A DNA stretch of 64,000 bases from Leucoraja erinacea (GCF_028641065.1 NC_073406.1:13888001-13952000), one strand, 5' to 3'; shown: positions 21,886 to 64,000, counted from the first letter of the stretch. Numbers and translations are program-made. The notes: generated by a model not told the origin, from the sequence alone.

Positions 21886-22704
21886 ATTTCAAGGAATAGC
21901 CATGCGTCAACTGCCAGTCCACCAGCCGTGAGTGAGCTGCCAGCACATCAGGCTTGTGGGACTGAGCTGCCACCACAAAAACCCATACCCGCCCTCCAGA
22001 AAGCCCCCCCACTGACCACCAATATTGGAATTGGTGGAGAGGTGGAATATTGCGTCGGGGGACCAGCCCTCCTGTGTGAACATGGGACCCAACGGGTCCC
22101 ACTTAGTCTAGTATCTTTTAAAAGTCATAATTATATATCTTCTATTGCTTTCTTTGGCACGATATTATAGATACAGACTTCCCTTTGAATGAAAAAGTTG
22201 CCCCTGAGATTGCTCTTAAATCTCTCCCTTTATCTGAAGCCTTTGTCCTCTAGGTTTAGTATCCTCAACCCTGGGAAAAAGATTGTGAGCATTCACATTA
22301 TCCATGCCCCTCATGGTCTTCTACATCTCAATCAGCCTCTTACATTCCAAAGAAAAAAGTCCCAGCCTATCCAACCTTTCCCTATAACTTAAGCCTGGAA
22401 GTCCAGGTAACATTCTGGTGCATCTCATCTGCACCCTTTCCAACTTACTTGCTATAAAATGATGACAGCCGACGTGGTTCATTGATTTTATTGCTGTGTA
22501 TCTGAGGAAACAACTTTGGACAAATACATAGATAGGGAAAGTTTAGAGGGATATGGGCCAGGTTCAGGCATACAAGACAAGCTCAGATAGACACCTTGGT
22601 CCACATGGACAGGTTGGGCCTGTTTCCATGCGGTACAACTCTACGACTCCAAAAGAGTTTTGCCAGAGAAGTGCACTATCAAATATCTGAGCTGAATGCA
22701 ATAA

Positions 22705-23005
22705 AAACATAGAACATAGACAATAGGTGCAGGAGTAGACCATTCGGCCCTTCGAACCTGCACCGCCATTCAATATGATCATGGCTGATCATCCAACTCA
22801 GTATCCTGTACCTGCCTTCTCTACATACCCCCTGATCCCTTTAGCCACAAGGGCCACATCTAACTCCCTCTTAAATATAGCCAATGAACTGGCCTCAACT
22901 ACCTTCTGTGGCAGAGAATTCCACAGATTCACCACTGTGTGAAAAATGTTTTCCTCATCTCGGTCTTAAAAGATTTCCCCCTTATCCTTAAACTGTGACC
23001 CCTTG
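22705..23005 (-). mobile_element. Young CR1 LINE 3' fragment
   Basis: Near-identical to the 3' part of 39648-40740; (aacatag)n tail. Confidence 0.85.
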
Positions 23006-23449
23006 TAGTGAGTAATAAGTAAGAACTCCTCAGAACCTGAGTGTACAAAATGCTTGGTGAAGTTGGGTTTCGAATAGTAGGTCCAAGTAATCATATCCAC
23101 GTGATGGCTCCTATTGACCCAGGAGATGGTGCAGAGGGAAGCAGGTACAATCAGATACAGTTTAAAACCTACCTGTTATTATTAGAGGCTGATCAAAAGT
23201 GCTTCATTCTATTGAGAAATTGCACAGAATTGTTTTTGCAGATATTCGAGGTTTAAGGAAAACATTTCACTGTGGGGAAATATGATGCATAGGCTTATTA
23301 TTGGCCAGCAGGAACTGTATTAAAATATTGCATATTGCTATTACCACAGGTTACACATTTTATGTAGATATTTTTCTTAATGCATTTTGTGGTTTGTTTG
23401 CATTTCTTGGGTCATAATTGTAAGTTTTCTTTTCCAGAATTTGAACAGA

Positions 23450-23467
23450 ATGGTTAAAGCATTTTTG
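23450..23467 (+). CDS. First coding exon (exon 23438-23467): ATG at 23450, MVKAFL
   Basis: Acceptor ttttcttttccag ends at 23437; agaATGG is a good Kozak context; phase-0 donor TTG|gtaagt. Confidence 0.75.
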
Positions 23468-26400
23468 GTAAGTTTATCAATGTTCAGTCAAGAGAGACAA
23501 AGGTAAAACGTTCATTTTCCATCTACTGTTTCTTCAGCAACTACTTACAAGGAGGAAACCTTTCCCCAAAGTTTTGGATTGGAGTCAAGAGGATTATAGG
23601 GGATAGGCACAAAATGCTGGAGTAAATCAGTGGGACAGGCAGCATCTCTGGAGGGAAGGAATGGGTGACGTTTTGGGTCGAGACTCTTCTTGTAGGGGAT
23701 GTCAGGAAGAACTCTTCCCACAAGAGCGTAGTTGAAAACTGGAATGCACTGCCTGGGATGGTGGTGGAGGCAGAGACACGTACAACAATTTAGAAGTATC
23801 TAAATGGACAGTTGAATCACTAAGGCACATGAACCAAGTGGTGGTAAACAGGATGAGTAGTTAGATAATTGATGGTTGGTGTGGATATGGTGAGCCAAAG
23901 TGTCTCTTGTTGTCTGACTCTACACTGCATGACAATAAATGTTGAGGACAAAGACAGGGTGCAATACCACGAGCCTACAGTAGAGTAACTTTTATTCAAC
24001 AATGATTGGGATAAGTAATTATTTCCCAGGTCACTTTTTTTGAAATGAATATCAATTATAATTTATTAAATTATTACTGGTGATATTCTCAAGATATCTG
24101 AAAGAGATTGGAAAATTGCAACAAATTATTATTGCAAAACAATGAGATGCATGGTCTGAAGAAGGGTTTCGGCCCGAAACGTTGCCTATTTCCTTCGCTC
24201 CATAGATGCTGCTGCACCCGCTGAGTTTCTCCAGCTTTTTTGTGTAACCTAATGAGATGCATGTCTGTTTGTAGTTTGTTTGGTTGTTTGTTTGTTGTCT
24301 TTTTGCACAAAGTCCACGAGCATTGCCACTTTTCATTTCACTGCACATCTCGTATGTGTATGTGACGAATAAACTTGACTTGACTTGACTTGATTTGGAT
24401 ACTTTCACTTGCATTTATTTACAAGACAGGTATATTGAGATGCAGCTTTACTAATATCTTTGTTTGATCCTAGGTATTTATAACTATTGTTAAACTCTGC
24501 ACCAACGGTAAGTATTACCGTTTGCATTGGATCATTTACAAACTTTTTAAAATTAATTCTGAAAACCATTCAAATGATAATTACAACAATTGTTTGCTTT
24601 TAGATTATGTTGCTGGATTTCGCAGTGAGTATATCCTTTCCATTCTAAATAGAACAAATTTTCACTCCAACATCAAAGCTCCATAATGCTTCAACCAGTG
24701 TGTCCTATATATTAATCAACTTAAAGAAATGCCACAACAGAATAACATATGATCACACACTACTTTCCTTATTTTGCATTTATTATCAATTTTGATTGTT
24801 AACTGGTTTTGCAAACCATCGATCGGGCTGGTCCAATATGAAATAGTTCAAAGGACCCCTATAGACACAAACTGGGACCTAACATGAGCTGGTAATTTAC
24901 TACACATGGAGTTGATTGATGACGACAGATGTGATTGTGTCTGGATCAGTTAGGAAGGTAAGAGGTAACATGAAGTGGACAAGAAAAATAAAGTGATGGG
25001 CAGAACAGGTAAACGGGTGGAGGGGGTTTGGAGCCAGTTTTCTTCTACAAGAGTTTGTGATGCGTTTGAAGGGAAATTTTGCTACGTGTAAGCTATGCCC
25101 GTCAACGTCTGCAGCTGTTCCGTCACAAAGCTTTCAGGTCTATCAGATCAAATGTTTACATTTAATTAACTTTTTCCTTTGTTTCTTCAGAAGCAGTCTG
25201 TTGCAAAACTGAGTGGTTTGACCGTGATGACCCATCAGGAAATGGAGATTATGAACTCCTCGCCGATCTGCAAAAGGAAAATCCCGGCCGCATCTGCACT
25301 AAACCAATTGCCTGTGAGGTAGAAACCACAAAAGGGATACCGGCCTCACAGACTGGAGAGAACTTCGCCAGGTACAACATATAGCCGGCCATATTATTGC
25401 ACTTCTATTATTTTATTCAAAGAGCATCAATAGTTTTAGCAACTACTTTATCTCACCTCTCTACATTCTGATCAACAGTTGCAACATTTCTACTGGGTTC
25501 TTTTGTGTGAACAAAAACCAACGTGATCGCGCCTGTCAAGATTACAGAATACGATTCACCTGCCCTGATTCATTTTGTGAGTATGATGCAATTGTAAAAC
25601 TTATTTTGTTAATATTAGCTCCAGAAGAAGATTATGACGCTGACATAATTGCAGCTCACCTATTACTCAGCCATCTAATTCCGGTCCCTATATTTGTTGA
25701 TTTTCTTAATTTCTAATAATTAATGTGTCCCGACCTTAAACATTCCTCCGTCTTTAACAGTCCCTTGGAGGGTGACTTGCCTCCTCTCTGCCGCTGTAGT
25801 GTCTGAAGTGGTTGACGAGGTCAACATGTGGTGTGCAGACTCTTCCATAAAAGGGGCAAATATTGGATGACATTGATTAATTCTGAGCATGTCTCAAATA
25901 ATAACTGAATTGTTTGTTTCTGCTTTTAGGTAGTGTTACCAAACCTCTTGGTGAGTATATCACTCCCATTATAAATATGGCAACATTGACATTGACAGCA
26001 ATATGAAAGCTCTTTCGAGCTTCAACCAGTATGTGTTAATGTTCGCTTCATAATAATCAAACTAAAAAACTGCGACATTGGACAATGGGGGCTTCAGTGA
26101 GACTGAACCTTAAGATTTGAAATGGTTATCATCTCATGTGTGCATGTTTCGGAGGAAATGCAACAGATTCACGGGAAAGATTGCAGAAATTGCATTTTTG
26201 CCACATGAGGAGAGATTGAATAGACCAGGGATACATAGACCTGCAGATGCTGGTTTACAAAATCAGACACAAAGTGCTGGTGAAGCTCCGCGGGTTAGGT
26301 CCCGCTACGACTGGGACTGTCGCCGGCAGTCGTCTGAAAAATTGCCGAAGTAGCACAGGGGCTTAACTTTTGTGTTTCTCCGGTCCTCTGGCAGCACATG

Positions 26401-29400
26401 TTCACCCGAGGATGGTAAATCACTTAAGTCATTTAATTATCCTGCCAAGCAAGATATCTGATTGCAAAAGGTGGGATTGACATGATGAGCACAGGAAAAC
26501 TAGACAGGAATTTCAGAGGCACTGAGACATCATGGGATTTGAGATGAGCTGGGAATTTAGAAAGTCGTGTTTTATTGATGAGAGAGTGGTGATATGCAGG
26601 GGTCAAGACCATTAGCAGTGGTGAGAGGAAACAGTCACCAATATCAGCAAATGTGGCTCAAGAAGAGGAATGTGATGTGATGGGCAGAACAGGGAATTAG
26701 CTGAAGGGAACTGGAGCTGGGTCTCATGTACATGAGTATGTGATGCATTCTGCATGGAAATATTGCTGCATGCAAGTTATGCCCAACATAGATAGCAGCA
26801 GTTTCATTATGTAGCTTTCAGATTTAACCGACCCAATGTTCACTTTGAATCTACTTTCTCTTTCTTCTCCTCAGTACGGTGTTGCAAAACTGTATGGTTT
26901 GACCGTGATGACCAATCAGGAAAAGGAGATTATGAACTCCTCGCCGATCTGCGAACAGAGAATCCCGGTCAGATCTGCAAGGATCCAATCGCCTGTGAGG
27001 TGGAGACAACGTCAGGGATTCCGGCCTCACAGACTGGAGAGAACATTGCCAGGTACAAGATATAGCCAGCCATAATATTGCACTTTTAATATTTCATTCA
27101 AAGTCCATCAGTAGATTTATCAACTACTTTATCACACCTCCCTACATTCTACTCAACAGTTGCGACGTTTCTACTGGATTCTTTTGTGTGAACAGCAACC
27201 AACGTGATGGCTCATGTCAAGATTACAGAATACGATTCACCTGCCCTGATTTTTATTGTGAGTATGAGGCAATTGTAAAATATCATTTGTGACCATTAGA
27301 TGTAGGAGTAGAACTGATGTTGATTCTGACTGTAATCGCAGCTTAACTTTTACTCGGCCACCCTCTTCCTATCTGTCTATTTGCTGATTTCCTTCCAATA
27401 GATCATTTGTCCCAACCTTAATCATTCCTCCTTCTGTGACTGTCCCATGGGATGGAGGGTGGCATGCCTCCTCTCTGCTACTGTGGGGTCTGAAATGGTT
27501 GACAAGGCCAATGTGTGTCGTGCAGACTTTTCCACATACTGTTTGGGGCAGATATTGGTTGACATTTATTAATTCTGAACATGTTTCCAATGACAACTAA
27601 CTGAATTGTTTGTTTCTGCTTTTAGGTGATGTTACCACACCTCCAGGTGAGTAATCCAAGGGTCTCGACCCCAAGCGTCACCTATTCCATCTGTCCAGAT
27701 ATGCTGCCTGTCCCGCTGAATTATTCCAGCATTTTATGTCTATCTTCAGTGTAAATTAGCATTTGCATTTCCTTCCTACATAATTAACTGAATTCATTGT
27801 TTTAGGCAATGTTACCATCTGGTGAATATTAGCCTAACATTATAAATAGTATAACAAATAGAGCAATATACTCTGCATCTCCATCCCCCACTAGGAAAGC
27901 CCTCCGTTTCTTCCTCGACTGCAGAACCATCCAATTTCCCTCCACCAACACTCTACTCCATCTAGCGGATCTGGTCCTCACCCTTAATAACTTCTCCTTC
28001 GACTACTCCCAGTTCCTCCAGGTCCAAGACATAGCTAAGGGCACCCGTATGGGCCCCAGCTATGCCTGCCTTTGTAGGGTATGTTGAACAATCCCTGTTC
28101 TAGGCATACACTGGCCCTATCCCCAAACTCTACCTCTCTTACATTGGTGCTACCTCCTGCGCCCATGCAGAACTCATGGACTTCATCACCAATTGCCATC
28201 CTGCACTCAAATTTACTTGGACCATCTCCGACAACTCCCTCCCCTTTCTTGATCTCACCGTCACCATCACAGGAAATAGACTGACATCTATGACAAACCC
28301 ACTGACTCCCACAACTACCTCGACTCAGTGTTTCCACTTTGAAGGAAATTACCTGAAATTCGGGGAATTCCGGTTGTCTTTGGGTAATTTTAGGGAAATT
28401 AAATAATATTTCGGGAACTTTCCAGGCTCGGTAAGCCTTCCCCAACTCCGCATGTGTAACTGCCGTCCCAACTATGCACGCGCGGAATCCGGGCCCACTG
28501 CACACGCGCGGAGAGACTCCAAAGGGTCCAATCAGGCCCGCGGGATGATTTGCGGAAAAAAAGTATCTACTTGTATATTTACCACCATCCGCGCCTGTGC
28601 AGTTTGGGGAGGCCCGTCAGCTGCGTCACAATTGACAATGGCGGCGGTGACGCGGTAGGGATGCGGTCTCCACACGCATGCGCAGTGGGCCCGAGCTCCT
28701 AGCGTGCGCAGTTGGGGCGGCAGTCGCACATGCGCAATTGGGGAAGCGTTACCGGGCCTTCCACAGAGCCCATTCCCTCCGCAACCACCTGGTTAATTCA
28801 TTACTTCCCACCCAAACCTCCCCCTCCCCTGGTACCTTCCCCTGCAACCACAGAAGATGCAACACCTGTCCATATACTTCCTCCCTCGACTCTGTCCAGG
28901 GACCACAACGTTCATTTCAGGTTAGGCAGAGGTTCAATTGCACCTCTTCCAACCTCATTTACTGTTTCCATTGGTCAAGATGTGGACTCTTATTCATCGG
29001 CGAGACAAAACGTAGACTGGTCGTTTCGCTGAACACCTTCGCTTAGTCAACCTGAACCTGATCTCCTGGTTGCTAAACACTTTAATTCTTCTTCCTGTTC
29101 CCACACAGACCTTTCTGTCCTAGGTCTCCTCCATTGTCAGAGTGAGGCTAAACACAAATTGGAGGAACAGCATCTCATATCTCCCTTGGGCAACTTACAG
29201 CCCAGTGGTATGAATTTTGATTTCCCTAACTTCAGGTATCCCTGGCATTCCCTTTCTCTCTATCCCTCCCCCACCCAAGACTCACAAGCTTCACCTAACA
29301 AACAGCTAACTAGGCCTGTTTCCTTTATCATCATTACTGTAGCGGAAGATTTTTCAAATCTGCCGCTACAGGAAATTAACTCCCTAGCCACTAATTGGGT

Positions 29401-32400
29401 GAGACGGGATAAGGGGAATATCTTCGGTACGCATGCAAGCTGCCTCAGAGACCTTCAGAGCTTCTCCTTTCATAAAGCATCAGCACACAGTCTTTTAATG
29501 AATATTTTTTGCATATCTTTCATTCATTGTTCTTTATCTCTCTACATTATCGTCTATATCTCTCCTTTCCCTTATCCCTAACCAGTCTGAAGAAGGGTCT
29601 TGACCTGAAACATCACCCACTCTTTCTCTCCAGACATGCTACCTGTCCCACTGCTCTAGCTGTCAATCTTCAGTTTCAACCAACAACTGCGGTTCATTCC
29701 TACACAGAGCGATTTCAAAGTTCTTAAGAGCTTCTCCAAATGTGTTTTAATGGCCACCTCATAATAATCAAGTTAAAAATCTGCCATTACAGATTATGGA
29801 AGCTTCAGTGAGACTGAACCTCGAGTGTTGTCTATCATCTTATCAAGGAACATAACTTGTGCTAGCCGTAGAGGGGAATATCACTGGGAGGTTGCAGAAA
29901 TTGCAATTTTCCACATGAGGAGAGTTTGAAAAGACTTGGGTTATAAAGAATTGCAGATGCTGCTTTACAAAATAATTTCTGCAGCATCAGTGCATCAGGC
30001 ATCATCTCGGGATAACATGGCTGGGTGATGATTCGGGTCGGAACCTTTCTTCAGACAATAACTGTTTTGTCACGATTACAGAATACGATTCACCTGCCCC
30101 GATTCCTTTTGCGATTATGAGGCAATTGTATAACTTTATTTGTTAATGTTAGCTACGGAATTAGGAGTGAAGCTGATGATAACTCTGACTGTAATCACAG
30201 CTCACCCTTTACCAGGCTATCTCTTCCTATCTCTCTATTAGCTGATTTCCTTACTTTCCTATAATAAATTTGACCCAATCTTAAACATTCCTTTCTTGAC
30301 TGTCCCTTGGGGTGGAGGGTTGCATGCCTCCTCTCTGCTACTCTGGGGTCTGAAGAGCTTGATGAGACCAATGTGTGGTGTGCTGACTCTTTCACAGAAG
30401 GGGCAGATATTGAATGACATTGACTAATTCTGAACATGTTTCCAATCATCCAGTAATTAACTGCATTGTTTGTTTCTGCTTTTAGGTGATGTTACCATAC
30501 CTCCAAGTGAGTATTGGCCTCACATTATAAACAGTGCCACAAATACAGCAATTTCAAATCTCTCTAAGAGCTTCCTCAAATTAGTTTTTATGTCCGCTTC
30601 GCAATAATTAAGTTAAAAAAACTGCTACAAAAATGGGGGCTTCAATGAGACTGAACCTCGAGAGTTGTCTGCAGTTATCGTCTTATCGAGGAACATAAAT
30701 TGTGCCTACCATGGTGGGAAGTACCACTGGCAAGGTTACAGAAATTGCAATTTACCACACGAGGAAAGGTTGAAAAGACTAGGGATACAAAGAACTACAG
30801 ACGGTGTTCTACAAAAAAAGAAACAAAATGCTGGAGCAACTCAGTGGCTGACGCATGATATCTGGAGAACAGGGAATGGTGATGTTTCAGGTCAGGACCC
30901 TTTTTTAGACCTGATTTGTTTTGTCTAGAGATTTGTGGAATGGGAAGTTATCTCATTCCATGAGGACTCCGTGCACAGGCACCGGTGTCTCAGAATAGAA
31001 TGAAGATAATTTGGGACTGAAACAGGACTCATTTCTTCACCAATAAGCTGTTGAATGTATAGAATCCTCCATTCCAGAGAGCAATGGAGGTTCAATCAGA
31101 AGAGATTATTCATTTACTGCACATTGAAGGATACGTTGATAGTGTTGAACAATGAGTCTGTGGTAGAAGATTGCCAATTAATTAAATGAATGATGGAGCA
31201 GGTTCGTAGGGCCAGCCAAATCTCTGAAGCCTGCTCCTAATTCTTAGGTTCTTATCTTCTATTCCAATATATGTTTTCGAAGGCAACATTAGTACCCTCA
31301 TCAACTTTATGTATGATCTGTGAAATCATTGTAAAGACCTGTCATTTTGGGGATTATCTTTGCCCCTCTCTTGTACAATGGAGTAACATCTGCGTTTCCC
31401 CGGTGCTCTGGCTGCACTTCATCAGTGACCTTGATCAATGGCGGAGCAGGTTTGAAGGCCACATCTATGACTCCTGCTTCTAATTCTCACTTTCTCATCT
31501 TATATTCTGATCTACATTTTAGAAGGAACTAGAGTACCCGTATTAACTTCCTGAGTGATGTTGGTTCATCATAGAGTCTGAACATTTTTTCTTGTTTCTA
31601 TATTGCTGCTGCAAGTAACAATGGCATTGTTCTATCAGGGACATACTGTATGACAATAAAACACTCTTGTCTCTGGACTCTTGCCAGTTCCACAACAAAC
31701 CTTTCTGGTTTGTAAGACCCAAAGTAAACATTGTTACTTCATCCGAAAGGCCGGTCATTTTTGGGATCATCTTAGCCCCTCTCTTGAACAAAGGAGTAAC
31801 TTCTGCGTTTCTCCGGATCTCTGACAGAAATTGTTCACGAGAGGAAAGTGACTGACTTAAGATTCATTTGAGTATTCTGCCAGCCATGATTGAGGATTGC
31901 AGGAGGTGGGATTGACACGAGGAGGACCAGGAAAACTAGACATGGATTTAGTAGGAATTCTGGGACTTGGTATCATGCTGGTAATTTACAAAGTTGGGAT
32001 TTTATTGAGGAGAGAGTGATGGCGATTGATGTGAAGGGGTCAGGACCAAATTGGAGCAACAGAACCTCATATTTTGCTTGCTCAGCTTACAACCCAGCAT
32101 TATGAATATTCATTATTTTAAATTCAAGTAACCCTTGCATTCCCTCTCTCTCCAGCCCTCACCTGTCCTAATCATCCTGCTAGTTTTACTGTTTGTATCA
32201 TCTTGTTATCCCCTTCTCCAAAGCCAACAATGGACCATGTGGGTTCTTCGGCCATTAGTGCAGGCTCTGATTTGTTCTGTACCTTTTTCATACCTCTAAT
32301 TTCTCTTTCCTCCAACTGTCAGTCTGAAGAAGGGTCTCATCATGAAACATCACCTATTCCTTTTCTCTAGAGATGTTACCTCCACAGCTAATTTGCTCCA

Positions 32401-50400: not shown

Positions 50401-53400
50401 ACCGTGATAACCCATCAGGAAATGGAGATTATGAAATCTTCCCCAATCTGCGAACTGAGAATCCCGGTCAGATCTGCACGGATCCAATCGCCTGTGAGGT
50501 GGAGACAACGTCAGGGATTCCGGCCTCACAGACTGGAGAGAACATTGCCAGGTACAAAATATAGCCGGCCATAATATTGCACTTTTATTATTTCATTCAA
50601 AGAGCATCAGTAGTTTTATCAACTACTTTATCACATCTCCCTACATTCTACTCAACAGTTGCAACGTTTCTACTGGATTCTTTTGTGTGAACATCAACCA
50701 ACGTGATGGCTCATGTCAAGATTACAGAATACGATTCACCTGCCCTGATTCCTTTTGTGAGTATGAGGCGATTGTAAAATATCATTTGTGAATATTAGTT
50801 ACTGAATTATGAATGGAGCTGATTATTACACAGACTGTAATAACTACTCACCTTTTGCTTAGCCACCCTCTTACTGTCCCTCTGTTTGCTGATTTCCAGA
50901 CTTTCCAATAGTATATTCATCCCCATCTTAAACACCCCTCCTTCTTTGACAGTCCCTGGAGGAGGGTGGCATGTCTCTTCTCTAGTTCTACAAGTTCTGT
51001 TGTGGTTGATGAGGTCAACATTTGGTGTGCAGATTTTGCACAGATGGGGCAGATATCTGCCGATAATCATTAAATCTGAACATGTTTCAAATAGTAATTA
51101 ACTGAATTGTTTGTTTCTCCTTTTAGGTGGTGTTACCGAACCTCCTGGTGAGTATATCGCTCCCATTGTAAAGAGGGCAATGTTAACAGTAATATGAAAG
51201 CTCTTATGAACTTCATCCAGGGTGTTTAAATGTCCGCTACATAATAACTAAGTTAAAAACTGCCACAACAGATTATAGGCGCTTCAGTGCGACTGAACCT
51301 CAAGAGTTGCTTGTAGTTATCATCTTGTTAAGGAAACAAATTGTGTCCATGCCATGGAGGGAATGCAAAACAGATTGACGGGATAGGTAACAGAAATTGT
51401 GATTTAGCCACATGAGAAGAAATTGCAAGTATTAGTAATACAAAGTACAGTAGATACTGGATTACAAAATGAGAAATAAAGTGCTGGAGTAACTGATCAT
51501 GTCAGGCATCATCTCTGGGATCATGAATAGGTGATATTTCGAGTCGGGACCCTTCTTCAGACTAGAACATGTTTCTCCAGGGATTGTAGAATGGAAAGTC
51601 ATCTCTGTCCCTTTGGACTCCAGGTGCATGCACCACTGTCTCAGCATGAGAGGAAGATATTTTGGGATTGAAATACGATTAGTTGTTTCACTCAGAAGGT
51701 GGTGTATTTTTGACATTCTTGATTCCAGAGAGCATTCGAGGACATTCAGAAGTGATTGTTAGTTTTCTGGACGTTAAAGGATATGTTGATAGTGCTGGAA
51801 AATGGACCTGAAATAGAAGATTGCTAGTTCAAATGGCCACATGTCTGACTCCTGCTCCTAATTCTTACTTTCTTTTCTGATATTCTGATTGATGTGTTAG
51901 AAGGCAACTACAGTACCCAACTTCATGTGTGGTGTTAATTCATCGTAAAGGCCTGTCATTTTTGTGATTATCTTTGCCCCTCTCTTGAACAAAGGAGTAA
52001 CCCTTGCATTCCCTCTCTCTCCATCCCTCACCTGCTGCAATCATCCTACTAGTTTTACTGTTTGTATCCCCTCGTTATTACCTCCTCCAAAGTCAACAAT
52101 GAACCATGTGGGCTCTTTGGCCATTAGTGCAGGCTCTGATTTGTTCTGTACATTTTCAAACCTCTAATTTCTCTCTCACCGGTCTCTCAGTTTGAGGAAG
52201 GGTCTCGACATGAACCGTCACCTATTTCTTTCCTCTAGAGATGCGACCTGCCGAGCTAATTTGCTGCAACATGTTGTGTCAATCCATCAGACCCAATGTT
52301 CACTTTGAATCTACTTTCTCTTTCTGCTCTTCTTCAGTGGGGAATTGCAAAACTGCGTGGTTTGACCGTGATAACCCATCAGGAAATGGAGATTATGAAA
52401 TCTTCCCCAATCTGCGAACTGAGAATCCCGGTCAGATCTGCATGGATCCGATCGCCTGTGAGGTGGAGACAACATCAGGGATTCCGGCCTCACAGACTGG
52501 AGAGAACATTGCCAGGTACAAAATAGAGCCAGCCATATTATAGCACTTTTATTATTTCATTTAAAGTGCATCAGAGGTTTTATCAACAACTTTATCATAT
52601 GTCCCTACATTCTACTCAACAGTTGCAACGTTTCTACTGGATTCTTTTGTGTGAACACCAACCAACGTGATCGCGCATGTCAAGATTACAGAATACGATT
52701 CACCTGCCCTGATTCCTTTTGTAAGTATGAGGCAATTGTAAAAACATATTTGTGAATATTAGCTACTGAATTATGAGTGGAGCTGATTATAACACAGACT
52801 GTAATAACAACTCACACTTTGCTTAGCCACCCTCTTCCTGTCCCTCTGTTTGCTGATTTCCAGACTTTCCAATAGTAAATTCATCCCCATCTTAAACACT
52901 CCTCTTTCTTTGACAGTCCCTTTGGATGGAGTGTGGCATGTTTCTTCTCTGGTTCTTTGAGTTCTGATGTGGTTGATGAGGCTAACGTGTGGTGTGCAGA
53001 CTCTAGCATAGATGGGGCAGATATCTGCTGACAATCATTAAATCTGAACATGTTTCAAATGATAATTAACTGAATTGTTTGTTTCTCCTTTTAGGTGGTG
53101 TTACCGAACCTCCTGGTGAGTATATCCCTCCCATTATAAAGAGGGCAATGTTAACAGTAATATGAAAGCTCTTATGAGTTTCATACAGTATGTTTTAATG
53201 TCCGCTACATAATAACTAAGTTAAAACTGGCAGATTATAGGCGCTTCAGTGCGACTGAACCTCAAGAGTTGCTTGTAGTTATCAGCTTATTAAGGAAACA
53301 AAATGTGTCCATGTCATGGAGGGAATGCAAAACAGATTCATGGGGAAGGTAACAGAAATTGTGATTTAGCCACATGAGAAGAAATTGCAAAGACTAGGAA

Positions 53401-56400
53401 TACAAACTACAGCAGATATGGATTACAAAATGCTGGAATAACAGAACGTATCAGGCATCATCTCCGAGATCATGAATAGGTCCTGTTTCGATTCGGGATC
53501 CATCTTCAGACTAGAACCCTTTTCTCTAGGGATTGTAGAATGGGAAGTCATCTCTGACTCCTGCTCCTAATTCTTACTTTCTTTTCTGATATTCTGATTT
53601 ATTTGTTAGAAGGTAACTAGAGTACTCATAAAAACTTTGTGTGGTGTTAATTCATCGTAAAGGCCTGTCATTTCTGTGATCATCTTTTCCCCTCTCTTGA
53701 ACAAAGGAGTAACTTCTGCGTTTCTCCGGTCCTCTGACATCACTTGTTCACTTGAGGAAAGTGACTCACATAAGAGTAATTTGAGTATTCTGCCAGGCAT
53801 GATTCAGGATTGCAGAATGTGGGATTGTCACAAGGAGGACCAGGAAAACTAGACATGGATTTCGTAGGAATTCTGGGACATGGTACCAGGCTGGTAATTT
53901 ATAAAGTTGGGATTTTATTGAGGAGAGAGGGATGGCGATTGATGTGAAGGGGTCAGGACCAATTGCAACAGTGAGAGGAAACCGTCACCAACATCAGCAA
54001 ATATGGGGCAAGAAGAAATAAGTGAAGTGATGGGCAGAACAGTGAACAAGGTGGAGGGAGCTGGAACTAGGTCTCATGTACTTGAGTATATGATGCGTTC
54101 TGAGGAGAAATATTGTTCATGTCAGTTGTGCCCAACGGTTAGCAAATCGATCAGGTCTCTCTGTCTCGACATGAAAGGTAACCTATTCCTTACCTCTAGA
54201 GATGCTACCTGGAGCTAATTTGCTACATAATTTTGTGTCAATCTGTCAGACCCAATGTTTACTTTCAATCTACTTTCTCTTTCTGCTCTTCAGTAGGGAA
54301 TTGCAAAACTGCGTGGTTTGACCGTGATAACCCATCAGGAAATGGAGATTATGAAACGATCCCCGATCTGCGAACTGAGAATCCCGGTCAGATCTGCATG
54401 GATCCAATCGCCTGTGAGGTGGAGACAACGTCAGGGATTCCGGCCTCACAGACTGGAGAGAACATTGCCAGGTACAAAATAGAGCCGGCCATAATATTGC
54501 ACTTTTATTATTTCATTCAAAGAGCATCAGTAGTTTTATCAACTACTTTATCACACCTCCCTACATTCTACTCAACAGTTGCAACGTTTCTACTGGATTC
54601 TTTTGTGTGAACAGCAACCAACGTGATGGCTCATGTCAAGATTACAGAATACGATTCACCTGCCCTGATTTCTTTTGTGAGTATTAGGCGATTGTAAAAT
54701 ATCATTTGTGAATATTAGCTACTGAATTATGAGTGGAGCTGAGTATTACACAGACTGTAATAACTACTCACCTTTTGCTTAGCCACCCTCTTCATGTCCC
54801 TCTGTTTGCTGATTCACAGACTTTCCAATAGTAATTTCATCCCCACCTTAAACACCCCTCCTTCTTTGACAGTCCCTTTAGATGGAGGGTGGCATGTCTC
54901 TTCTCTAGTTCTACTAGTTCTGTTGTGGTTGATGAGGCTAACGTGTGGTGTGCAGACTCTTGCACAGATGGGGCAGATATTTGCTGACAATCTTTAAATC
55001 TGAACATGTTTCAAATGATAATTAACTGAATTGTTTGTTTCTCCTTTTAGGTGGTGTAACCGAACCTCCTGGTGAGTATATCGATCCCATTATAAAGCGG
55101 GTCAGTCAGCATCTCTGACGAAAAGGAATAGATTGTAATGAGGAGACCAGTCTTCAGTCTGAGAGTCAGGGGAGAGGGAATCTAGCGGTATGAAAACGTA
55201 CAGAACAAAGCAGAGCTGGCACCGATGGCCAAAGAGCCCACAATAATAAACCTTATCGGACGACTAAGGTGGAGAAGAGATGGAGAGAGTTGGAAGGCAA
55301 AGATTACATGAAATTAGAGAAATTAATGTGCAAATATTGGGTTGTAAGCTACCCAAACAAAATATGAAGTGCTGTTACTCCAATTTGCATAAGGCCTTAC
55401 TCTGACAGTGGAGGTGGTGCAGGACAGAAAAGCACTCTGACAGTGGAGACAGACTCGTTCTGTCCTGGGTCACCTCCAATGTCAGAGTTCGGCCACATGT
55501 AAATTGAAACAGAACCTCATATTTTGCTTGCTCAGCTTACAACCCAGCATTATGAATATTGATTATTTTAAATTCAAGTAACCCTTGCATTCTCTCTCTC
55601 TCCATCCCTCACTTGCCCCATACATCCTGCAAGTTTTGCTTTTTGTATCCCTTCCTTATCACCTCCTCCAAAGCCAACAATGAACCATGTGGGCTCTTTG
55701 ACCATTAGTGCAGGTTCTGAATTGTTCTGAACCTTTCCATACCCTAAATTTCTCAGTCCCCTGACTCTCTGTCTGAAGACGGATCTCAACATGAAAGGTC
55801 CCCTATTCCTTACCTACAAAGGTGCTACCTGGAGCTAATTTGCTCCATAATTTTGTGTCAATCTGTCAGACCCAATGTTCACCTTCAATCTACTTTCTCT
55901 TTCTGCTCTTCAGTAGGGAATTGCACAACTCCATGGTTTGACCGTGATAACCCATCAGGATTTGGAGATTATGAAACGTTCCCCCATCTGCGAAATGAGA
56001 ATCCCGGTCAGATCTGCACGGAACCAATCGCCTGTGAGGTAGAGACAACGTCAGGGATTCCGGCCTCACAGACTGGAGAGAACATTGCCAGGTACTAAAT
56101 AGAGCCGGCCATAATATTGCACTTTTATTATTTCATTCAAAGAGCATCAGTAGTTTTATCAACTACTTTATCACATCTCCCTACATTCTACTCAACAGTT
56201 GCAACGTTTCTACTGGATTCTTTTGTATGAACAGCAACCAACGTGATGGCTCATGTCAAGATTACAGAATACGATTCACCTGCCCTGATTCCTTTTGTGA
56301 GTATGAGGCGATTGTAAAATATCATTTGTGAATATTAGCTACTGAATTATGAGTGGAGCTGATTATTACACAGACTGTAATAACTACTCACCTTTTGCTT

Positions 56401-59400
56401 AGCCACCCTCTTCCTGTCCCTCTGTTTGCTGATTTCCAGACTTTCCAATAGTAAATTCATCCCCACCTTAAACACTCCTCCTTCTTTGACAGTTCCTTTA
56501 GATGGAGGGTGGCATGTCTCTTCTCTGGTTCTACTAGTTCTGTTGTGGATGATGAGGTAAACATGTGGTGTGCAGACTTTTGCACAGATGGGGCAGATAT
56601 CTGCTGATAATCATTAAATCTCAACATGTTTCAAATGATAATTAACTGAATTGTTTTGTTTCTTCTTTTAGGTGGTGTTACCGAACCTCCTGGTGAGTAT
56701 ATCGCTCCCATGATAAAGAGGGCAATGTTAACAGTAATATGAAAGCTCTTATGAACTTCATCCAGTGTGTTTAAATGTTCTCTACATATAAACAAGTTAA
56801 AAAACTGCCACAACAGATTATAGGCGCTTCAGTGCGACTGAACCTCAAGAGTTGCTTGTAGTTATCATATTGTTAAGGAAACAAATTGTGTCCATGCCAT
56901 GGAGGGAATGCAAAACAGATTGACGGGATAGGTAACAGAAATTGTGATTTAGCCACATGAGAAGAAATTGCAAGTATTAGTAATACAAAGTACAGTAGAT
57001 ACTGGATTACAAAATGAGAAGTAAAGTGCTGGAGTAAGGTCCTGATTCGAAACATAGAAACATAGAATTAGGTGCAGAAGTAGGCCATTCGCCCTTTCGA
57101 GCCTGCACCGCATTCAATATGATCATCATGGCTGATCATCCAACTCAGTATCCCGTACCTGCCTTCTCTCCATACCCCCAGATCCCTTTAGCCACAAGGG
57201 CCACATCTAACTTGGGATTGAAATATAGCCAATGAACTGTGCCTCAACTCAGAAGGTGGTGAGAGTTCCAGAGATTCACCACTCTCTGCATGAAAAAATT
57301 TCTTCTCATCTCGGTGATTAAAGGATTTCCCTTTTATCCTTAAGCTGTGACCCCTTGTCCTGGAATTCCCTAACATCGGGAACAATCTTCCTGCATCTAG
57401 CCTGTCCAACCCCTTAATAATTTTGTAAGTTTCTATAAGATCCCCTCTCAATCTCCTAAATTCTAGAGAGTATAAACCAAGTCTATCCAGTCTCTTCTTC
57501 ATAAGACAGTCCTGACATCCCAGGAATCAGTCTGGTGAACCTTCTCTGCACTCCCTCTATGGGAATAATGTCCTTCCTCAGATTTGGAGTACGCAATACT
57601 CCAGGTGTGGTCTCACCAAGACCCTGTACAACTGCAGTAGAACCTCTCTGCTCCTATACGCAAATCCTTTAGCAGTGAAAGCTAACATACCATTCGCTTA
57701 TCTTTACTGCCTGCTGCCTGCTGCACCTGCAATGACTGGTGTACCATGAGACCCAGGTCTCGCTGCATCTCCCCCTTTCCCAATCGGCCACCATTTAGAT
57801 AATAGTCTGCTTTCCTGTTTTTGCCACCAAAATTTATAACCTCACATTTATCCACATTATACTGCATCTGCCAAACATTTGCCCACTCACCCAGCCTATC
57901 CAAGTCACCCTGCAGTCTCCTAGCATCCTCCTCACAGCTAACACTGCCCCCCAGCTTAGTGTCATCCGCAAACTTGGAGATATTGCCTTCAATTCCCTCA
58001 TCCAGATCATTAATATATATTGTAAATAGCTGGGGTCCCAGTACTGAGCCTTGGGGTACCCCACTAGTCACTGCCTGCCATTGTGAAAAGGACCCGTTTA
58101 CTCCTACTCTTTGCTTCCTGTAGGAGTAAAAGGGTCCTTTTCACAATGGCAGGCAGTGACTAGTGGGGTACCCCAAGGCTCAGTACTGGGACCCCAGCTA
58201 TTTACATGTCAGGCATCATCTCTGGGATAATGAATAGGTGATATTTCGAGTCGGGACCCTTCTTCAGACTAGAACATGTTTCTCCAGTGATTGTAGAATG
58301 GAAAGTCATCTCTGTCCCTTTGGACTCCAGGTGCATGCACCACTGTTTCAGCATGAGAGGAAGATATTTTGGGATTGAAATATGATTAGTTGTTTCACTC
58401 AGAAGGTGGTGTATTTTTGCCATTCTTCATTGCAGAGCGCATTCGAAGACATTCAGAAGTGATTGTTAGTTTTCTGGACGTTAAAGGATATGTTGATAGT
58501 GCTGGAATATGGACCTGAAATAGAAGATTGCTAGTTCAAATGGCCACATGTCTGACTCCTGCTCCTAATTCTTTCTTTCTTTTCTGATATTCTGATTGAT
58601 GTGTTAGAAGGCAACTACAGTACCCAACTTCATGTGTGGTGTTAATTCACCGTAAAGGCCTGTCATTTTTCTGATCATCTTTGCCCCTCTCTTGAACAAA
58701 GGAGTAACCCTTGCATTCCCTCTCTCTCCATCCCTCACCTGCTGCAATCATCCTACTAGTTTTACTGTTTGTATCCCCTCGTTATTACCTCCTCCAAAGT
58801 CAACAATGAACCAATGATAATCATTAAATCTCAACATGTTTCAAATGATAATTAACTGAATTGTTTTGTTTCTCCTTTTAGGTGGTGTTACCGAACCTCC
58901 TGGTGAGTATATCGCTCCCATGATAAAGAGGGCAATGTTAACAGCAATATGAAAGCTCTTATGAACTTCATCCAGGGTGTTTAAATGTCCGCTACATAAT
59001 AAACAAGTTAAAAAACTGCCACAACAGATTATATGCGCTTCAATGCAACTGAACCTCAAGAGTTGCTTGTAGTTATCATCTTGTTAAGGAAACAAAATGT
59101 GTCCATACCTCCTCCAAAGTCAACAATGAACCATGTGGGCTCTTTGGCCATTAGTGCAGGCTCTGATTTGTTCTGTACATTTTCAAACCTCTAATTTCTC
59201 TCTCACCGGTCTCTCAGTTTGAGGAAGGGTCTCGACATGAACCGTCACCTATTTCTTTCCTCTAGAGATGCGACCTGCCGAGCTAATTTGCTGCAACATG
59301 TTGTGTCAATCCATCAGACCCAATGTTCACTTTGAATCTACTTTCTCTTTCTGCTCTTCAGTGGGGAATTGCAAAACTGCGTGGTTTGACCGTGATAACC

Positions 59401-62400: not shown

Positions 62401-63528
62401 TAGATACTGGATTACAAAATAAGAAATAAAGTGCTGGAGTAACTGATCATGTCAGGCATCATCTCTGGGATCATGAATAGGTGATATTTCGAGTCGGGAC
62501 CCATCTTCAGACTAGAACATTTTTCTCCAGGGATTGTAGAATGGAAAGTCATCTCTGTCCCTTTGGACTCCAGGTGCATGCACCACTGTCTCAGCATGAG
62601 AGGAAGATATTTTGGGATTGAAATACGATTAGTTGTTTCACTCAGAAGGTGGTGTATTTTTGTCATTCTTCATTCCAGAGAGCATTCGAGGACATTCAGA
62701 AGTGATTGGTAGTTTTCTGGACGTTAAAGGATATGTAGATTGTGCTGGAAAATGGACCTGAAATAGAAGATTGCTAGTTCAAATGGCCATATGTCTGACT
62801 CCTGTTCCTAATTCTTACTTTCTTTTCTGATATTCAGATTTATGTGTTAGAAGGCAACTACAGTACCCAACTTCATGTGTGGTGTTAATTCATCGTAAAG
62901 GCTTGTCATTTTTGTGATCATCTTTGCCCCTCTCTTGAACAAAGGAGTAACCCTTGCATTCCCTCTCTCTCCATCCCTCACCTGCTGCAATCATCCTACT
63001 AGTTTTACTGTTTGTATCCCCTCGTTATTACCTCCTGCAAAGTCAACAATGAACCATGTGGGCTCTTTGACCATTAGTGCAGGCTCTGATTTGTTCTGTA
63101 CATTTTCAAACCTCTAATTTCTCTCTCACCGGTCTCTCAGTTTGAGGAAGGGTCTCGACATGAACCGTCACCTATTTCTTAGCTACTGAATTATGAATGG
63201 AGCTGATTATTACACAGACTGTAACAACTACTCACCTTTTGCTTAGCCACCCTCTTCCTGTCCCTCTGTTTGCTGACTTTCCAATAGTAAATTCATCCCC
63301 ATCTTAAACACTCCTCCTTCTTTGACAGTTCCTTTAGATGGAGGGTGGCATGTCTCTTCTCTGGTTCTACTAGTTCTGTTGTGGTTGATGAGGCTAACGT
63401 GTGGTCTGCAGACTTTTGCACAGATGGGGCAGATATCTGCTGATAATCATTAAATCTCAACATGTTTCAAATGATAATTAACTGAATTGTTTTGTTTCTC
63501 CTTTTAGGTGGTGTTACCGAACCTCCTG
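23450..63528 (+). CDS. Multi-exon gene for a secreted tandem Mucin2_WxxW/CysD-like domain protein (CILP N-terminal/mucin CysD-like); at least 16 domains; 3' end beyond the window
   Basis: Hand-spliced with GT-AG boundaries and compatible phases throughout. Leader exons are 23450-23467, 24474-24507 and 24604-24624, followed by 16 cassettes of exon A (178 nt; 181 in unit 1), exon B (98 nt) and a microexon (21 nt). Consensus unit: [99 protein letters not shown]. The motifs WFDRDxPSGxGDYE, GxxCxNxxQ and CxDYxIRFxC are recognised from the Mucin2_WxxW family. Confidence 0.9.
24154..24250 (+). mobile_element. ~97-bp Penelope-derived short element with a 13-bp target-site duplication
   Basis: aatgagatgcatg flanks both sides (24141-24153 and 24251-24263); the body resembles the Penelope end at ~29585-29655. 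Confidence 0.75.
24474..24507 (+). CDS. Leader exon [11 protein letters not shown] (hydrophobic signal-peptide core)
   Basis: Branch-like ctaat at 24451, acceptor tag at 24471-24473, donor G|gtaagt; 34 nt, phase 0 to 1. Confidence 0.75.
24604..24624 (+). CDS. 21-nt microexon (D)YVAGFR, paralogous to the array linker microexons
   Basis: Acceptor tgtttgcttttag and donor gtgagtatatc; the flanks resemble those of the later 21-nt exons; phase 1-1. Confidence 0.75.
25191..25950 (+). CDS. CysD-like cassette 1 (exons 25191-25371, 25479-25576, 25930-25950)
   Basis: [100 protein letters not shown]; AG/GT ends. Confidence 0.88.
26875..27646 (+). CDS. CysD-like cassette 2 (exons 26875-27052, 27160-27257, 27626-27646)
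   Basis: [38 protein letters not shown].../CDVSTGFFC...CPDFY/CDVTTPP; AG/GT ends. Confidence 0.88.
27865..29660 (+). mobile_element. Degenerate Penelope-like retroelement (RT and GIY-YIG fragments) with nested inserts
   Basis: RT region ..[11 protein letters not shown] and [26 protein letters not shown]. Endonuclease [16 protein letters not shown]...[11 protein letters not shown]...[13 protein letters not shown], then EEQHLI..LG.LQP.GMN. Confidence 0.85.
30070..30506 (+). pseudogene. Decayed cassette: 3' remnant of exon B with a mutated donor, plus an intact orphan linker microexon at 30486-30506
   Basis: gattacagaatacgattcacctgccccgattcctttt is followed by gcgatt instead of gtgagt. The microexon gtgatgttaccatacctccaa keeps AG/GT. 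Confidence 0.75.
32470..33246 (+). CDS. CysD-like cassette 3 (exons 32470-32647, 32755-32852, 33226-33246)
   Basis: 178/98/21-nt exons, open frame, AG/GT ends. Confidence 0.88.
34437..35214 (+). CDS. CysD-like cassette 4, A type (exons 34437-34614, 34722-34819, 35194-35214)
   Basis: 178/98/21-nt exons; ICMDP variant. Confidence 0.88.
36389..37166 (+). CDS. CysD-like cassette 5, B type (exons 36389-36566, 36674-36771, 37146-37166)
   Basis: 178/98/21-nt exons; ICTDP variant; linker CGVTGPP. Confidence 0.88.
38357..39130 (+). CDS. CysD-like cassette 6, A type (exons 38357-38534, 38642-38739, 39110-39130)
   Basis: 178/98/21-nt exons, open frame. Confidence 0.88.
39648..40738 (-). mobile_element. 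Young 5'-truncated CR1 LINE inserted in an array intron
   Basis: ORF 39922-40554: [47 protein letters not shown]. (aaacatag)n tail; ctgcca(g)gcat is repeated at both junctions. Confidence 0.92.
41238..42015 (+). CDS. CysD-like cassette 7, B type (exons 41238-41415, 41523-41620, 41995-42015)
   Basis: 178/98/21-nt exons, open frame. Confidence 0.88.
43206..43983 (+). CDS. CysD-like cassette 8, A type (exons 43206-43383, 43491-43588, 43963-43983)
   Basis: 178/98/21-nt exons, open frame. Confidence 0.88.
45158..45936 (+). CDS. CysD-like cassette 9, B type (exons 45158-45335, 45443-45540, 45916-45936)
   Basis: 178/98/21-nt exons, open frame. Confidence 0.88.
47211..47231 (+). CDS. Orphan linker microexon (GVTEPP); the domain exons of this unit are deleted
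   Basis: Intact AG/GT; the upstream junction cctatttctt|agctactg at ~46883 skips exons A and B. Confidence 0.6.
48422..49199 (+). CDS. CysD-like cassette 10, A type (exons 48422-48599, 48707-48804, 49179-49199)
   Basis: 178/98/21-nt exons, open frame. Confidence 0.88.
50374..51147 (+). CDS. CysD-like cassette 11, B type (exons 50374-50551, 50659-50756, 51127-51147)
   Basis: 178/98/21-nt exons, open frame. Confidence 0.88.
52338..53115 (+). CDS. CysD-like cassette 12, A type (exons 52338-52515, 52623-52720, 53095-53115)
   Basis: 178/98/21-nt exons, open frame. Confidence 0.88.
54294..55071 (+). CDS. CysD-like cassette 13 (exons 54294-54471, 54579-54676, 55051-55071)
   Basis: 178/98/21-nt exons; variant DYETIPDL. 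Confidence 0.88.
55095..55800. mobile_element. Head-to-head decayed Penelope 3'-end fragments in the intron before cassette 14
   Basis: ctctgacagtggaggtg..caggacagaa (55401-55430) is inverted relative to ttctgtcctgg..cacctccaatgtcagag (55458-55487); the + arm resembles 29110-29280. Confidence 0.55.
55914..56692 (+). CDS. CysD-like cassette 14, divergent (exons 55914-56091, 56199-56296, 56672-56692)
   Basis: [31 protein letters not shown]...; AG/GT ends. Confidence 0.88.
57049..58204 (-). mobile_element. Young 5'-truncated CR1 LINE with an inverted 5' segment, in an array intron
   Basis: ORF 57682-58071: [32 protein letters not shown]. 58120-58206 is an inverted copy of 58021-58107. Confidence 0.9.
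58882..58902 (+). CDS. Orphan linker microexon (GVTEPP)
   Basis: Intact AG/GT inside a ~290-bp segment bracketed by a 28-bp direct repeat. Confidence 0.5.
59362..60141 (+). CDS. CysD-like cassette 15, A type (exons 59362-59539, 59647-59744, 60121-60141)
   Basis: 178/98/21-nt exons; CNVIT variant has lost the sequon. Confidence 0.87.
61330..62097 (+). CDS. CysD-like cassette 16, B type (exons 61330-61507, 61615-61712, 62077-62097)
   Basis: 178/98/21-nt exons, open frame. Confidence 0.87.
63508..63528 (+). CDS. Orphan linker microexon (GVTEPP); domain exons deleted
   Basis: Same deletion junction (cctatttctt|agctactg, ~63180) as at ~46883. Confidence 0.6.
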
Positions 63529-64000
63529 GTGAGTATATCGCTCCCATGATAAAGAGGGCAATGTTAACAGTAATATGAAAGCTCTTATGAACTTCATCCA
63601 GTGTGTTTAAATGTCCGCTACATAATAAACAAGTTAAAAAACTGCCACAACAGATTATAGGCGCTTCAATGCGACTGAACCTCAAGAGTTGCTTGTAGTT
63701 ATCATCTTGTTAAGGAAACAAAATGTGTCCATGCCATGGAGGGAATGCAAAACAGATTGACGGGATAGGTAACAGAAATTGTGATTTAGCCACATGAGAA
63801 GAAATTGCAAGTATTAGGAATACAAAGTACAGTAGATACTGGATTACAAAATGAGAAATAAAGTGCTGGAGTAACTGATCATGTCAGGCATCATCTCTGG
63901 GATCATGAATAGGTGATATTTCGAGTCGGGACCATTCTTCAGACTAGAACATGTTTCTCCAGGGATTGTAGAATGGATAGTCATCTCTGTCCCTTTGGAC

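Follow-up and report, generated by a model that had tools for sequence, protein, structure and literature searches.

The stretch of little skate (Leucoraja erinacea) DNA analyzed here (GCF_028641065.1 NC_073406.1:13888001-13952000) is 64 kb long, contains no N, and is referred to below as the window. From 23450 onward, its plus strand carries two putative leader exons and a long array of short exons encoding CysD (Mucin2_WxxW) domains, and the gene to which they belong is the little skate member of the published fish Mucin-5AC family. Each unit of the array consists of three exons: exon A, of 178 nucleotides (nt); exon B, of 98 nt; and exon C, of 21 nt. Units 3–16 alternate between two types, M (...QICMDP...) and T (...QICTDP...), which together make up a 3.9-kb two-unit repeat. 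The features of the gene are as follows, with positions counted from the first letter of the window.

23450..23467, plus strand: putative leader exon 1, coding part, ATG GTT AAA GCA TTT TTG, encoding MVKAFL, donor gtaagt.
24474..24507, plus strand: putative leader exon 2, 34 nt (11 codons plus 1 nt), acceptor ...tcctag, donor gtaagt.
A 25194-25371, B 25479-25576, C 25930-25950, plus strand: unit 1, linker SVTKPL, nine Cys, divergent (84-86% exon identity to the others).
A 26875-27052, B 27160-27257, C 27626-27646, plus strand: unit 2, linker DVTTPP, nine Cys.
27654..32333, plus strand: decayed unit and inserted sequence, without exon A, with a truncated B (30068-30110) and an intact C (30486-30506, DVTIPP).
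A 32470-32647, B 32755-32852, C 33226-33246, plus strand: unit 3.
A 34437-34614, B 34722-34819, C 35194-35214, plus strand: unit 4 (M type).
A 36389-36566, B 36674-36771, C 37146-37166, plus strand: unit 5 (T type), linker GVTGPP.
A 38357-38534, B 38642-38739, C 39110-39130, plus strand: unit 6 (M).
A 41238-41415, B 41523-41620, C 41995-42015, plus strand: unit 7 (T).
A 43206-43383, B 43491-43588, C 43963-43983, plus strand: unit 8 (M).
A 45158-45335, B 45443-45540, C 45916-45936, extra C 47211-47231, plus strand: unit 9 (T).
A 48422-48599, B 48707-48804, C 49179-49199, plus strand: unit 10, in RefSeq LOC129711659.
A 50374-50551, B 50659-50756, C 51127-51147, plus strand: unit 11, in RefSeq LOC129711659.
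52338..56692, plus strand: units 12-14, with A starting at 52338, 54294, and 55914, B at 52623, 54579, and 56199, and C at 53095, 55051, and 56672; RefSeq XP_055515433.1.
58882..58902, plus strand: extra linker exon C, GVTEPP.
A 59362-59539, B 59647-59744, C 60121-60141, plus strand: unit 15 (M).
A 61330-61507, B 61615-61712, C 62077-62097, extra C 63508-63528, plus strand: unit 16 (T); the gene continues past 64000.

To locate exon copies, one exon of each kind was compared with the window by blastn, and the splice sites and frames of the matches were then checked; queries in all searches were single exons or database proteins rather than the joined translation. Exon A occurs 16 times on the plus strand, exon B as 16 full copies plus one truncated copy, and exon C 20 times. 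AG/GT splice sites and an open frame were found in 16/16, 16/16, and 20/20 full copies, respectively, and splice sites and the expected phase are kept in all 52 of them (25194-63528, plus strand). The intron between A and B measures exactly 107 nt in 16/16 units. Exons A, B, and C start in phases 1, 2, and 1, and their codon layouts (A = 2+174+2, B = 1+96+1, C = 2+18+1) fit throughout the array; the codons split at the boundaries are AG|T, T|GT, and either G|TG or G|TA. Along the array, two (A B C) units come first, then the decayed unit (truncated B, then C), and finally 14 more (A B C) units. Four extra C exons, found after units 9, 14, and 16 and in the decayed unit, leave the frame intact because C is 21 nt long. 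Together, the exons sum to 4,888 nt, or approximately 1,629 codons if every exon is used, with consistent phases and a frame still open at 64000, in agreement with an earlier note on this DNA that had proposed one uninterrupted frame of more than 1,600 amino acids (aa) running off the window end. The same note had described at least 16 CysD domains in a row without proline/threonine/serine-rich (PTS) regions, and in little skate the array indeed comprises 16 three-exon units separated by 7-aa linkers only. The linkers are 6–7 aa long, and exon C encodes GVTEPP in 16 of its 20 copies. Fourteen units contain the eight Cys described earlier (three in exon A, four in exon B, and one in the codon at the B|C junction), and units 1 and 2 depart from that description with nine. 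The peptide singled out in the earlier note is present in 12/16 exon A copies.

Domain identity was assessed with the Pfam profile PF13330 (Mucin2_WxxW, or CysD; profile length 88, gathering cut-off 22.4 bits), as the earlier note had suggested. Translations of exon A matched positions 2-57 with 40.7-41.0 bits (3/3 tested) and those of exon B matched positions 59-88 with 31.3-31.6 bits (2/2 tested), so that the two jointly span positions 2-88. Each exon passes the gathering score on its own, so a complete domain takes A plus B, and C serves as a linker. The protein encoded by units 12-14, P0197 (XP_055515433), was additionally modeled with AlphaFold2 from a 24-sequence alignment, yielding three confident domains (block predicted local distance difference test, pLDDT, 84-96; mean pLDDT 80.7) and low confidence in the linkers and intron-derived ends. 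The top eight Foldseek matches of this model in the PDB were all mucin CysD domains, from MUC5B (8oer_I), MUC2 (6tm6, 6tm2, 7a5o, 8ck2, and 8s03), and MUC5AC (8ov0), among which 6tm6 is MUC2 CysD1, 8s03 is MUC2 CysD2, and 8ov0 is MUC5AC CysD7. The best match was 8oer_I (E 1e-4, TMt 0.75, root-mean-square deviation 1.7), and the CysD domains of the gel-forming mucins thus share both Pfam family and fold with the skate units (Foldseek probability 1.00, TMt 0.56-0.75, 26-28% identity). A PDB sequence search with exon A alone had returned a weak MUC5B CysD match (E 0.089) beside chance matches to xanthan lyase, a result settled by the fold search.

The skate domain departs from the mucin pattern in two respects. 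The WxxW motif, a candidate C-mannosylation site, occurs in 0/16 exon A copies, all 16 of which have [K/T]-T-x-W-F instead; the teleost members P0003 and P0004 retain C-W-T-x-W. Moreover, the ten Cys forming five intradomain disulfides that are described for MUC2 CysD (PMC3195396) are not matched by the skate units, with their eight or, in units 1 and 2, nine Cys. The 8-Cys skate domain is a variant within the CysD family. For the two Ca2+ sites described for CysD (PMC7599080), the one indirect pointer is that the invariant or nearly invariant columns of the 24-sequence alignment (D44, G50, D51, and E53) sit in an F-D-R-D...G-D-Y-E loop.

At the level of the whole protein, the resemblance to gel-forming mucins ends. 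In MUC2, MUC5AC, and MUC5B, CysD domains occur singly, with long PTS regions to either side and VWD assemblies and a CTCK flanking them, whereas in the skate protein CysD makes up the whole. Gel-forming mucins are marked by VWD-C8-TIL assemblies at the N-terminus, long PTS regions, and a CTCK at the C-terminus (PMC4948705), and no exon encoding any of these lies between the leader and unit 1. Further upstream, a Pfam match was obtained for 0/6 larger open reading frames (ORFs), the upstream 23 kb having been checked through ORFs of at least 90 aa only. Across the family proteins, no VWD, C8, TIL, CTCK, TSP1, or Ig parts were found, and the proteins stop right after the last CysD. CILP proteins combine one WxxW domain with TSP1, Ig, and a long C-terminal part; CILP1 and CILP2 thus have one Mucin2_WxxW domain in common with the skate gene, and their TSP1, Ig, and long C-terminal parts were not seen in skate. 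Several family members nevertheless carry the automatic name 'CILP-like'.

To place the gene among known proteins, exon A was used as a phmmer query against 1.84 billion representatives, giving 487 matches at E<=1e-3. The top match was a Stegostoma 'uncharacterized protein si:dkey-205h13.2' of 1658 aa (18 matched stretches, 68% identity), and further top matches included a Mobula 'mucin-2-like' protein (7 stretches) and proteins of Sebastes (10) and Cynoglossus (8). Clusters of the top matches include whale shark and bamboo shark proteins of 1,476-1,950 aa, and poly-CysD proteins of the same build are modeled in sharks (1,476-2,128 aa), other batoids, teleosts, bichir, sturgeon, and lizards. 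The zebrafish gene muc5AC, formerly si:dkey-205h13.2, is described by Ma et al. (Int J Mol Sci 2025;26:708; PMC11765562) as encoding a signal peptide followed by six CysD domains, without VWD or PTS. According to the same paper, homologues carry 2-27 CysD, including those of Amblyraja radiata (XP_032903886, 27 CysD) and Scyliorhinus (XP_038629501, 19 CysD), and the A. radiata and zebrafish proteins are 48.75% identical. The paper applies the name 'little skate' to A. radiata.

The published accessions and the proteins examined here fall into the same clusters. XP_032903886 (P0199) shares a 90% cluster with L. erinacea proteins, among them P0172 (XP_055515432, LOC129711657, 1037 aa) and P0197 (XP_055515433), and the window encodes two of these little skate proteins; S. 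canicula XP_038629501 clusters with P0171, and tongue-sole XP_008309417 with P0004. Over 301 aa, P0197 and carp si:dkey-205h13.2 share 49% identity, and P0197 is equally close (49%) to the counterpart in Danio aesculapii, which is the level given in the paper for skate against zebrafish. Composition is likewise CysD-only: after the leader, the window holds A, B, and C exons alone, and P0172, whose precomputed Pfam annotation gives PF13330 plus just one other family (PF11747), stops with ...YKIRFTCP directly after a CysD. The skate build, with its probable signal peptide, resembles that of fish Mucin-5AC, in which a signal peptide is followed by tandem CysD only, with no VWD, VWC, CK, or long PTS. 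The two differ in that the six CysD of zebrafish Mucin-5AC contrast with the 16 counted in the window and a probable total of at least 27 for the skate gene; in that, by alignment, cyprinid domains lack two of the eight Cys found in elasmobranch domains; and in an extra 21-nt linker exon in batoids. Function has been tested in zebrafish alone. The only pointer to one-to-one orthology is that NCBI names the shark genes si:dkey-205h13.2.

The architecture, its occurrence in both cartilaginous and bony fishes, the 27-CysD skate homologue, and a loss-of-function phenotype are already in print (PMC11765562). A full-text search on family accession and LOC numbers returned that paper alone, as did 'cupula' combined with 'CysD', and a literature search for tandem or poly-CysD yielded nothing relevant beyond PMC7599080. 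Three claims of the earlier note give way here. It had called the protein lineage-specific, and proteins of the same build are modeled from sharks to lizards; it had called such proteins largely uncharacterised, and a paper of January 2025 describes the family together with the cupula phenotype of a zebrafish knockout (PMC11765562); and its claim to novelty falls by the outcome the note itself had named as fatal, namely orthology to a mucin already known, one whose architecture many vertebrates share.

Expression was examined by mapping reads over 22000-27700 from two contig runs (X1 and X8) and two raw RNA sequencing runs (X17 and X21). The joint between exons A and B of unit 2 (27052^27160, GT..AG) was spanned in 4/4 runs, at a contig depth of 1932 in X1 and 13 in X8, and by 2 reads in X17 and 5 in X21, and one X1 contig runs from an exon B through a consensus exon C into the first letters of an exon A. 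The check for spliced reads proposed in the earlier note thus succeeded for the A^B joint, through reads of unit 14 type: where reads on the unit 2 junction mismatch unit 2, they agree with that type. For the three junctions the note had named (25371^25479, 25576^25930, and 25950^26875), the sites are canonical, and read cover is lacking, with unit 1 exon A at depth 0 in 4/4 runs. The bulk of depth in the mapped stretch falls on high-copy repeats at 22573-23145, 23528-23718, and 24101-24482. Contig depth over these interspersed repeats climbs to as much as ~1e6, and raw RNA reads number in the thousands; the high depth is seen on both strands and in all four runs.

RefSeq splits the little skate gene into at least three fragments, an observation that is new here. 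P0229 (LOC129711659, 246 aa) corresponds to units 10-11 (window 48325-51200), with exact exon matches and a unique match to exon B at 50659. P0197 (XP_055515433.1, 'mucin-5B-like', 345 aa) corresponds to units 12-14 (window 52241-56760), again with exact exon matches, those to exon A at 54294 and 55914 and exon B at 56199 being unique. Both use the same junctions as our exon calls. Their starts are artificial: the ATG lies in the intron before an M-type exon A, the first 33 residues are translated intron, and the 25-aa start recurs at six places in the window. Their last ~20 residues are read-through of the exon C donor, a region with pLDDT <50 in the P0197 model. The third model, P0172, has no exact exon in common with the window and starts mid-domain; it comprises two linker-type units and nine linker-less 'NCKTQW' units, and ends in ...YKIRFTCP as shark proteins do. 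The scaffold of P0172 has the same length as that of P0197 and P0229 (28,221,721), and P0172 has a neighboring LOC number. A. radiata P0199 consists of 17 linker-type units followed by 10 linker-less ones, with doubled linkers (GVTEPPGGVTEPP) present. Because that model has the same unit order, P0172 appears to be the 3' part of the same gene, in which case the whole gene would have approximately 27-28 CysD or more, at least 11 of them downstream as LOC129711657, and the window would hold roughly its 5' two-thirds. Since A. radiata XP_032903886 itself starts mid-domain (MNSNQRD...), the published count of 27 CysD is a lower bound from a model that lacks the signal peptide.

The array itself is young, having grown recently as a 3.9-kb two-unit repeat, a history that is also new here. 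Across 32.3-64 kb, copies of this repeat follow one another, broken up by insertions, and their nucleotide identity, counting introns, is 93-99%, which bears out the recent expansion proposed earlier. Units 4, 8, 10, and 12 are 100% identical (rounded) across exons and the A-B intron. Among the young units, exons are more alike than the A-B intron (mean 97.0% vs 93.2%; variable columns 31/270 vs 22/107), variable sites are spread evenly over codon positions in units 3-16 (9/12/10), and frame, Cys, and splice sites are kept in 14/14 units (units 3-16, 32470-61712). Older units are more distant from the rest, unit 1 at 84-86% and unit 2 at 90-93% exon identity. Homologues of the linker exon in sawfish encode AVTTPP, up to three in a row.

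These data also bear on whether the locus holds one gene at all. The separate LOCs in RefSeq (246, 345, and 1037 aa), the one decayed unit at 27654-32333, and the weak codon-level constraint among young units would suit a cluster of short independent genes or of decaying pseudogene units. We regard this as extremely unlikely, as P0197 and P0229 have intron-derived starts, exon C read-through ends, and no signal peptide, all 52 full exon copies are intact in splice sites and frame, the X1 contig joins B^C^A, and the A. radiata (27 units) and shark models are single long proteins.

The 5' leader exons can, it appears, be placed by batoid homology, which is likewise new here. In the first, MVKAFL is identical in 5/6 residues to the start of a Pristis (sawfish) protein, P0219 (MVKVFL); the corresponding residues are MAKVFL in Mobula and MAKVLL in Hypanus. 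The exon 1 start proposed in the earlier note, 23438, is preceded by AG. Leader exon 2 must have a length of 1 mod 3 because the frame has to reach phase 1 of unit 1 exon A, and 24474-24507 has this phase, a pyrimidine-rich acceptor, and a gtaagt donor; 8/11 of its residues are identical to Pristis P0219 residues 7-17, VFITITILCPN. The N-terminal sequences compared were those of sawfish P0219 (MVKVFLVFITITILCPN), Mobula (MAKVFLAFLTVII), and Hypanus (MAKVLLVFLTVII). An N-terminal signal peptide is thus probably present, and the signal-peptide-like N-terminus of the earlier note gains support from homology over just these 17 residues, without RNA support. Two alternatives were discarded. The most hydrophobic candidate for leader exon 2, at 24275-24311, is T/G-rich and of low complexity, has a weak donor (gtccac), and is a high-copy repeat (depth 1e5 in all runs). 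The N-terminus of a Rhinoraja model (P0198) was rejected as a guide to the start, as the introns preceding six T-type units of the window encode an identical peptide, indicating a prediction artefact.

Taken with the published zebrafish work, these features make it likely, in our judgment, that the window is the 5' part of the little skate orthologue of fish muc5AC, and that its product is a secreted CysD chain cross-linking the gel of the lateral-line cupula. The chain would begin with a short signal peptide and continue with CysD modules only, each a beta-sandwich of ~92 aa and eight Cys encoded by exons A and B, joined by 7-aa G-V-T-E-P-P linkers from exon C. With ~27 CysD, it could act as a multivalent beads-on-a-string scaffold that cross-links an extracellular hydrogel, its beads contacting each other or glycans non-covalently and probably in a Ca2+-dependent manner. 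Such a mode would agree with the proposal that non-covalent CysD dimers serve as gel cross-links (PMC3195396) and with a solved CysD structure, described as binding two Ca2+ ions and as making contacts without which MUC2 filaments do not form (PMC7599080). It also has an engineered parallel: mice expressing artificial tandem CysD stretches are reported to have more robust mucus (Gouyer et al. 2015, cited in PMC7599080). Like the proposed skate chain, the product of that transgene is secreted and consists of consecutive CysD, which reportedly strengthen a mucin gel, but it is an engineered derivative of a human mucin, and its site of action is the mucus of the gut.

The site of action is suggested by zebrafish only. 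There, in situ hybridization and a 3-kb promoter reporter are reported to confine muc5AC expression to the support cells of neuromasts; in the CRISPR mutant, cupulae are reported to be shorter (38.2 vs 47.4 um) and the startle response that vibration evokes to be weaker (PMC11765562). In skate, lateral-line neuromast support cells would correspondingly secrete the chain into the cupula. The lateral line was absent from the tissues listed in the earlier note, and it is the tissue with experimental support in an orthologue. Among the candidates of that note was a general role in cross-linking skin mucus, egg jelly or capsule, or cartilage matrix. CysD domains do function in epithelial mucus (PMC3195396, PMC7599080), family members bear automatic names such as 'mucin-5AC-like' and 'CILP-like', and real PTS stretches separate the CysDs of two stingray relatives, Hypanus sabinus (P0222) and Mobula hypostoma (P0002). 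Against this stand the reported restriction of zebrafish expression to neuromasts, the lack of VWD, C8, TIL, CTCK, TSP1, and Ig parts in proteins that end after the last CysD, and the fact that the automatic names track the domain only; we consider a general cross-linker very unlikely. In the two stingrays, the linkers have grown into long Ser/Thr/Pro-rich stretches; the family thus appears to include true mucin-like members, with almost none in skates and sharks.

A second sensory gel deserves separate consideration. The same protein might act at a different or additional site, the gel of the ampullary electroreceptors (the earlier note had listed electrosensory gel among its candidates), where the poly-CysD chain would be a 'mucin-like' core bearing N-linked keratan sulfate. 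An N-x-S sequon at the start of exon B is kept in 14/16 copies. Skate ampullary gel is reported to contain a mucin-like glycoprotein with low-sulfation, mainly N-linked keratan sulfate (PMC6425839 and PMC10987296, citing Zhang et al. 2018), and Zhang et al. 2018 proposed a mucin scaffold, according to PMC8379299. Spliced contigs also reach depths of ~830-1930 in X1 (2018), compared with 7-13 in X8, but contig depth is a poor measure of expression. Cell contamination makes ampullary proteomes hard to interpret, and proteolysis hardly alters proton conductance (PMC8379299). An ampullary site seems to us unlikely.

Several observations weigh against the cupula reading or parts of it. Read depth is 0 on both leader exons and on unit 1 exon A in 4/4 runs, so that the N-terminus and signal peptide rest on short homologies (5/6 and 8/11 residues). 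Because the junction reads carry unit 14-type letters, they prove that units of the gene are spliced and expressed and do not prove this of unit 2 itself; X17 and X21, moreover, contribute just 2 and 5 of them. The physical continuity of the DNA from the window to LOC129711657 is deduced from gene models. Non-synonymous codon differences among units 3-16 exceed synonymous ones (462 vs 183, all pairs), and constraint on individual units looks weak beyond frame, splice sites, and cysteines. Copy number in an array of 93-100% identity may be affected by mis-assembly. Finally, the tissue of action in skate is extrapolated from zebrafish, and in the account given in PMC11765562 the protein itself was not seen in the cupula.

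The practical value of the window lies in curation: RefSeq holds the gene as at least three short models, the published skate model is without its 5' end, and what the window adds is a probable gene start, the pattern of exon lengths and phases (178/98/21 nt), and an account of how the repeat arose. Since lateral-line and electroreceptor development are both studied in the little skate as a laboratory model, a correct gene model would allow one to ask whether the zebrafish cupula protein is also made in ampullary organs. On the widest interpretation, which we think unlikely, an elasmobranch cupula protein would have been amplified from a few CysD beads to ~20-28, in skates through the very recent 3.9-kb repeat and a batoid-specific linker exon, and would have a role in ampullary gel. 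If this were true, the long-unidentified 'mucin' of ampullary gel would be named and made testable.

Some smaller features of the region are recorded here. Units 1 and 2 each start with two adjacent Cys (VCC, 25196-25204, and RCC, 26877-26885), a start absent from the sawfish, Mobula, and Hypanus N-termini, and the odd Cys of these units could form an intermolecular disulfide near the N-terminus. Unit 1 exon A is preceded by a NAGNAG tandem acceptor (cag|aag|) with sites at 25191 and 25194, both phase-preserving and one codon apart. Within the decayed unit, 27654-29716 is ~2 kb of GC-richer non-unit sequence (GC 0.478 at 28001-30000) with ORFs of 120-156 aa on both strands. A Pfam match was found for 0/4 of the insertion ORFs tested (28-29.6 kb), and a reading of the insertion as a Penelope-type retroelement, being unsupported by these ORFs, was dropped. 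Upstream of the gene lie two minisatellites, one with a 47-bp unit repeated 8.1 times (93% matches) at 20800-21180 and the other with a 48-bp unit repeated 5.3 times (86%) at 21634-21887.

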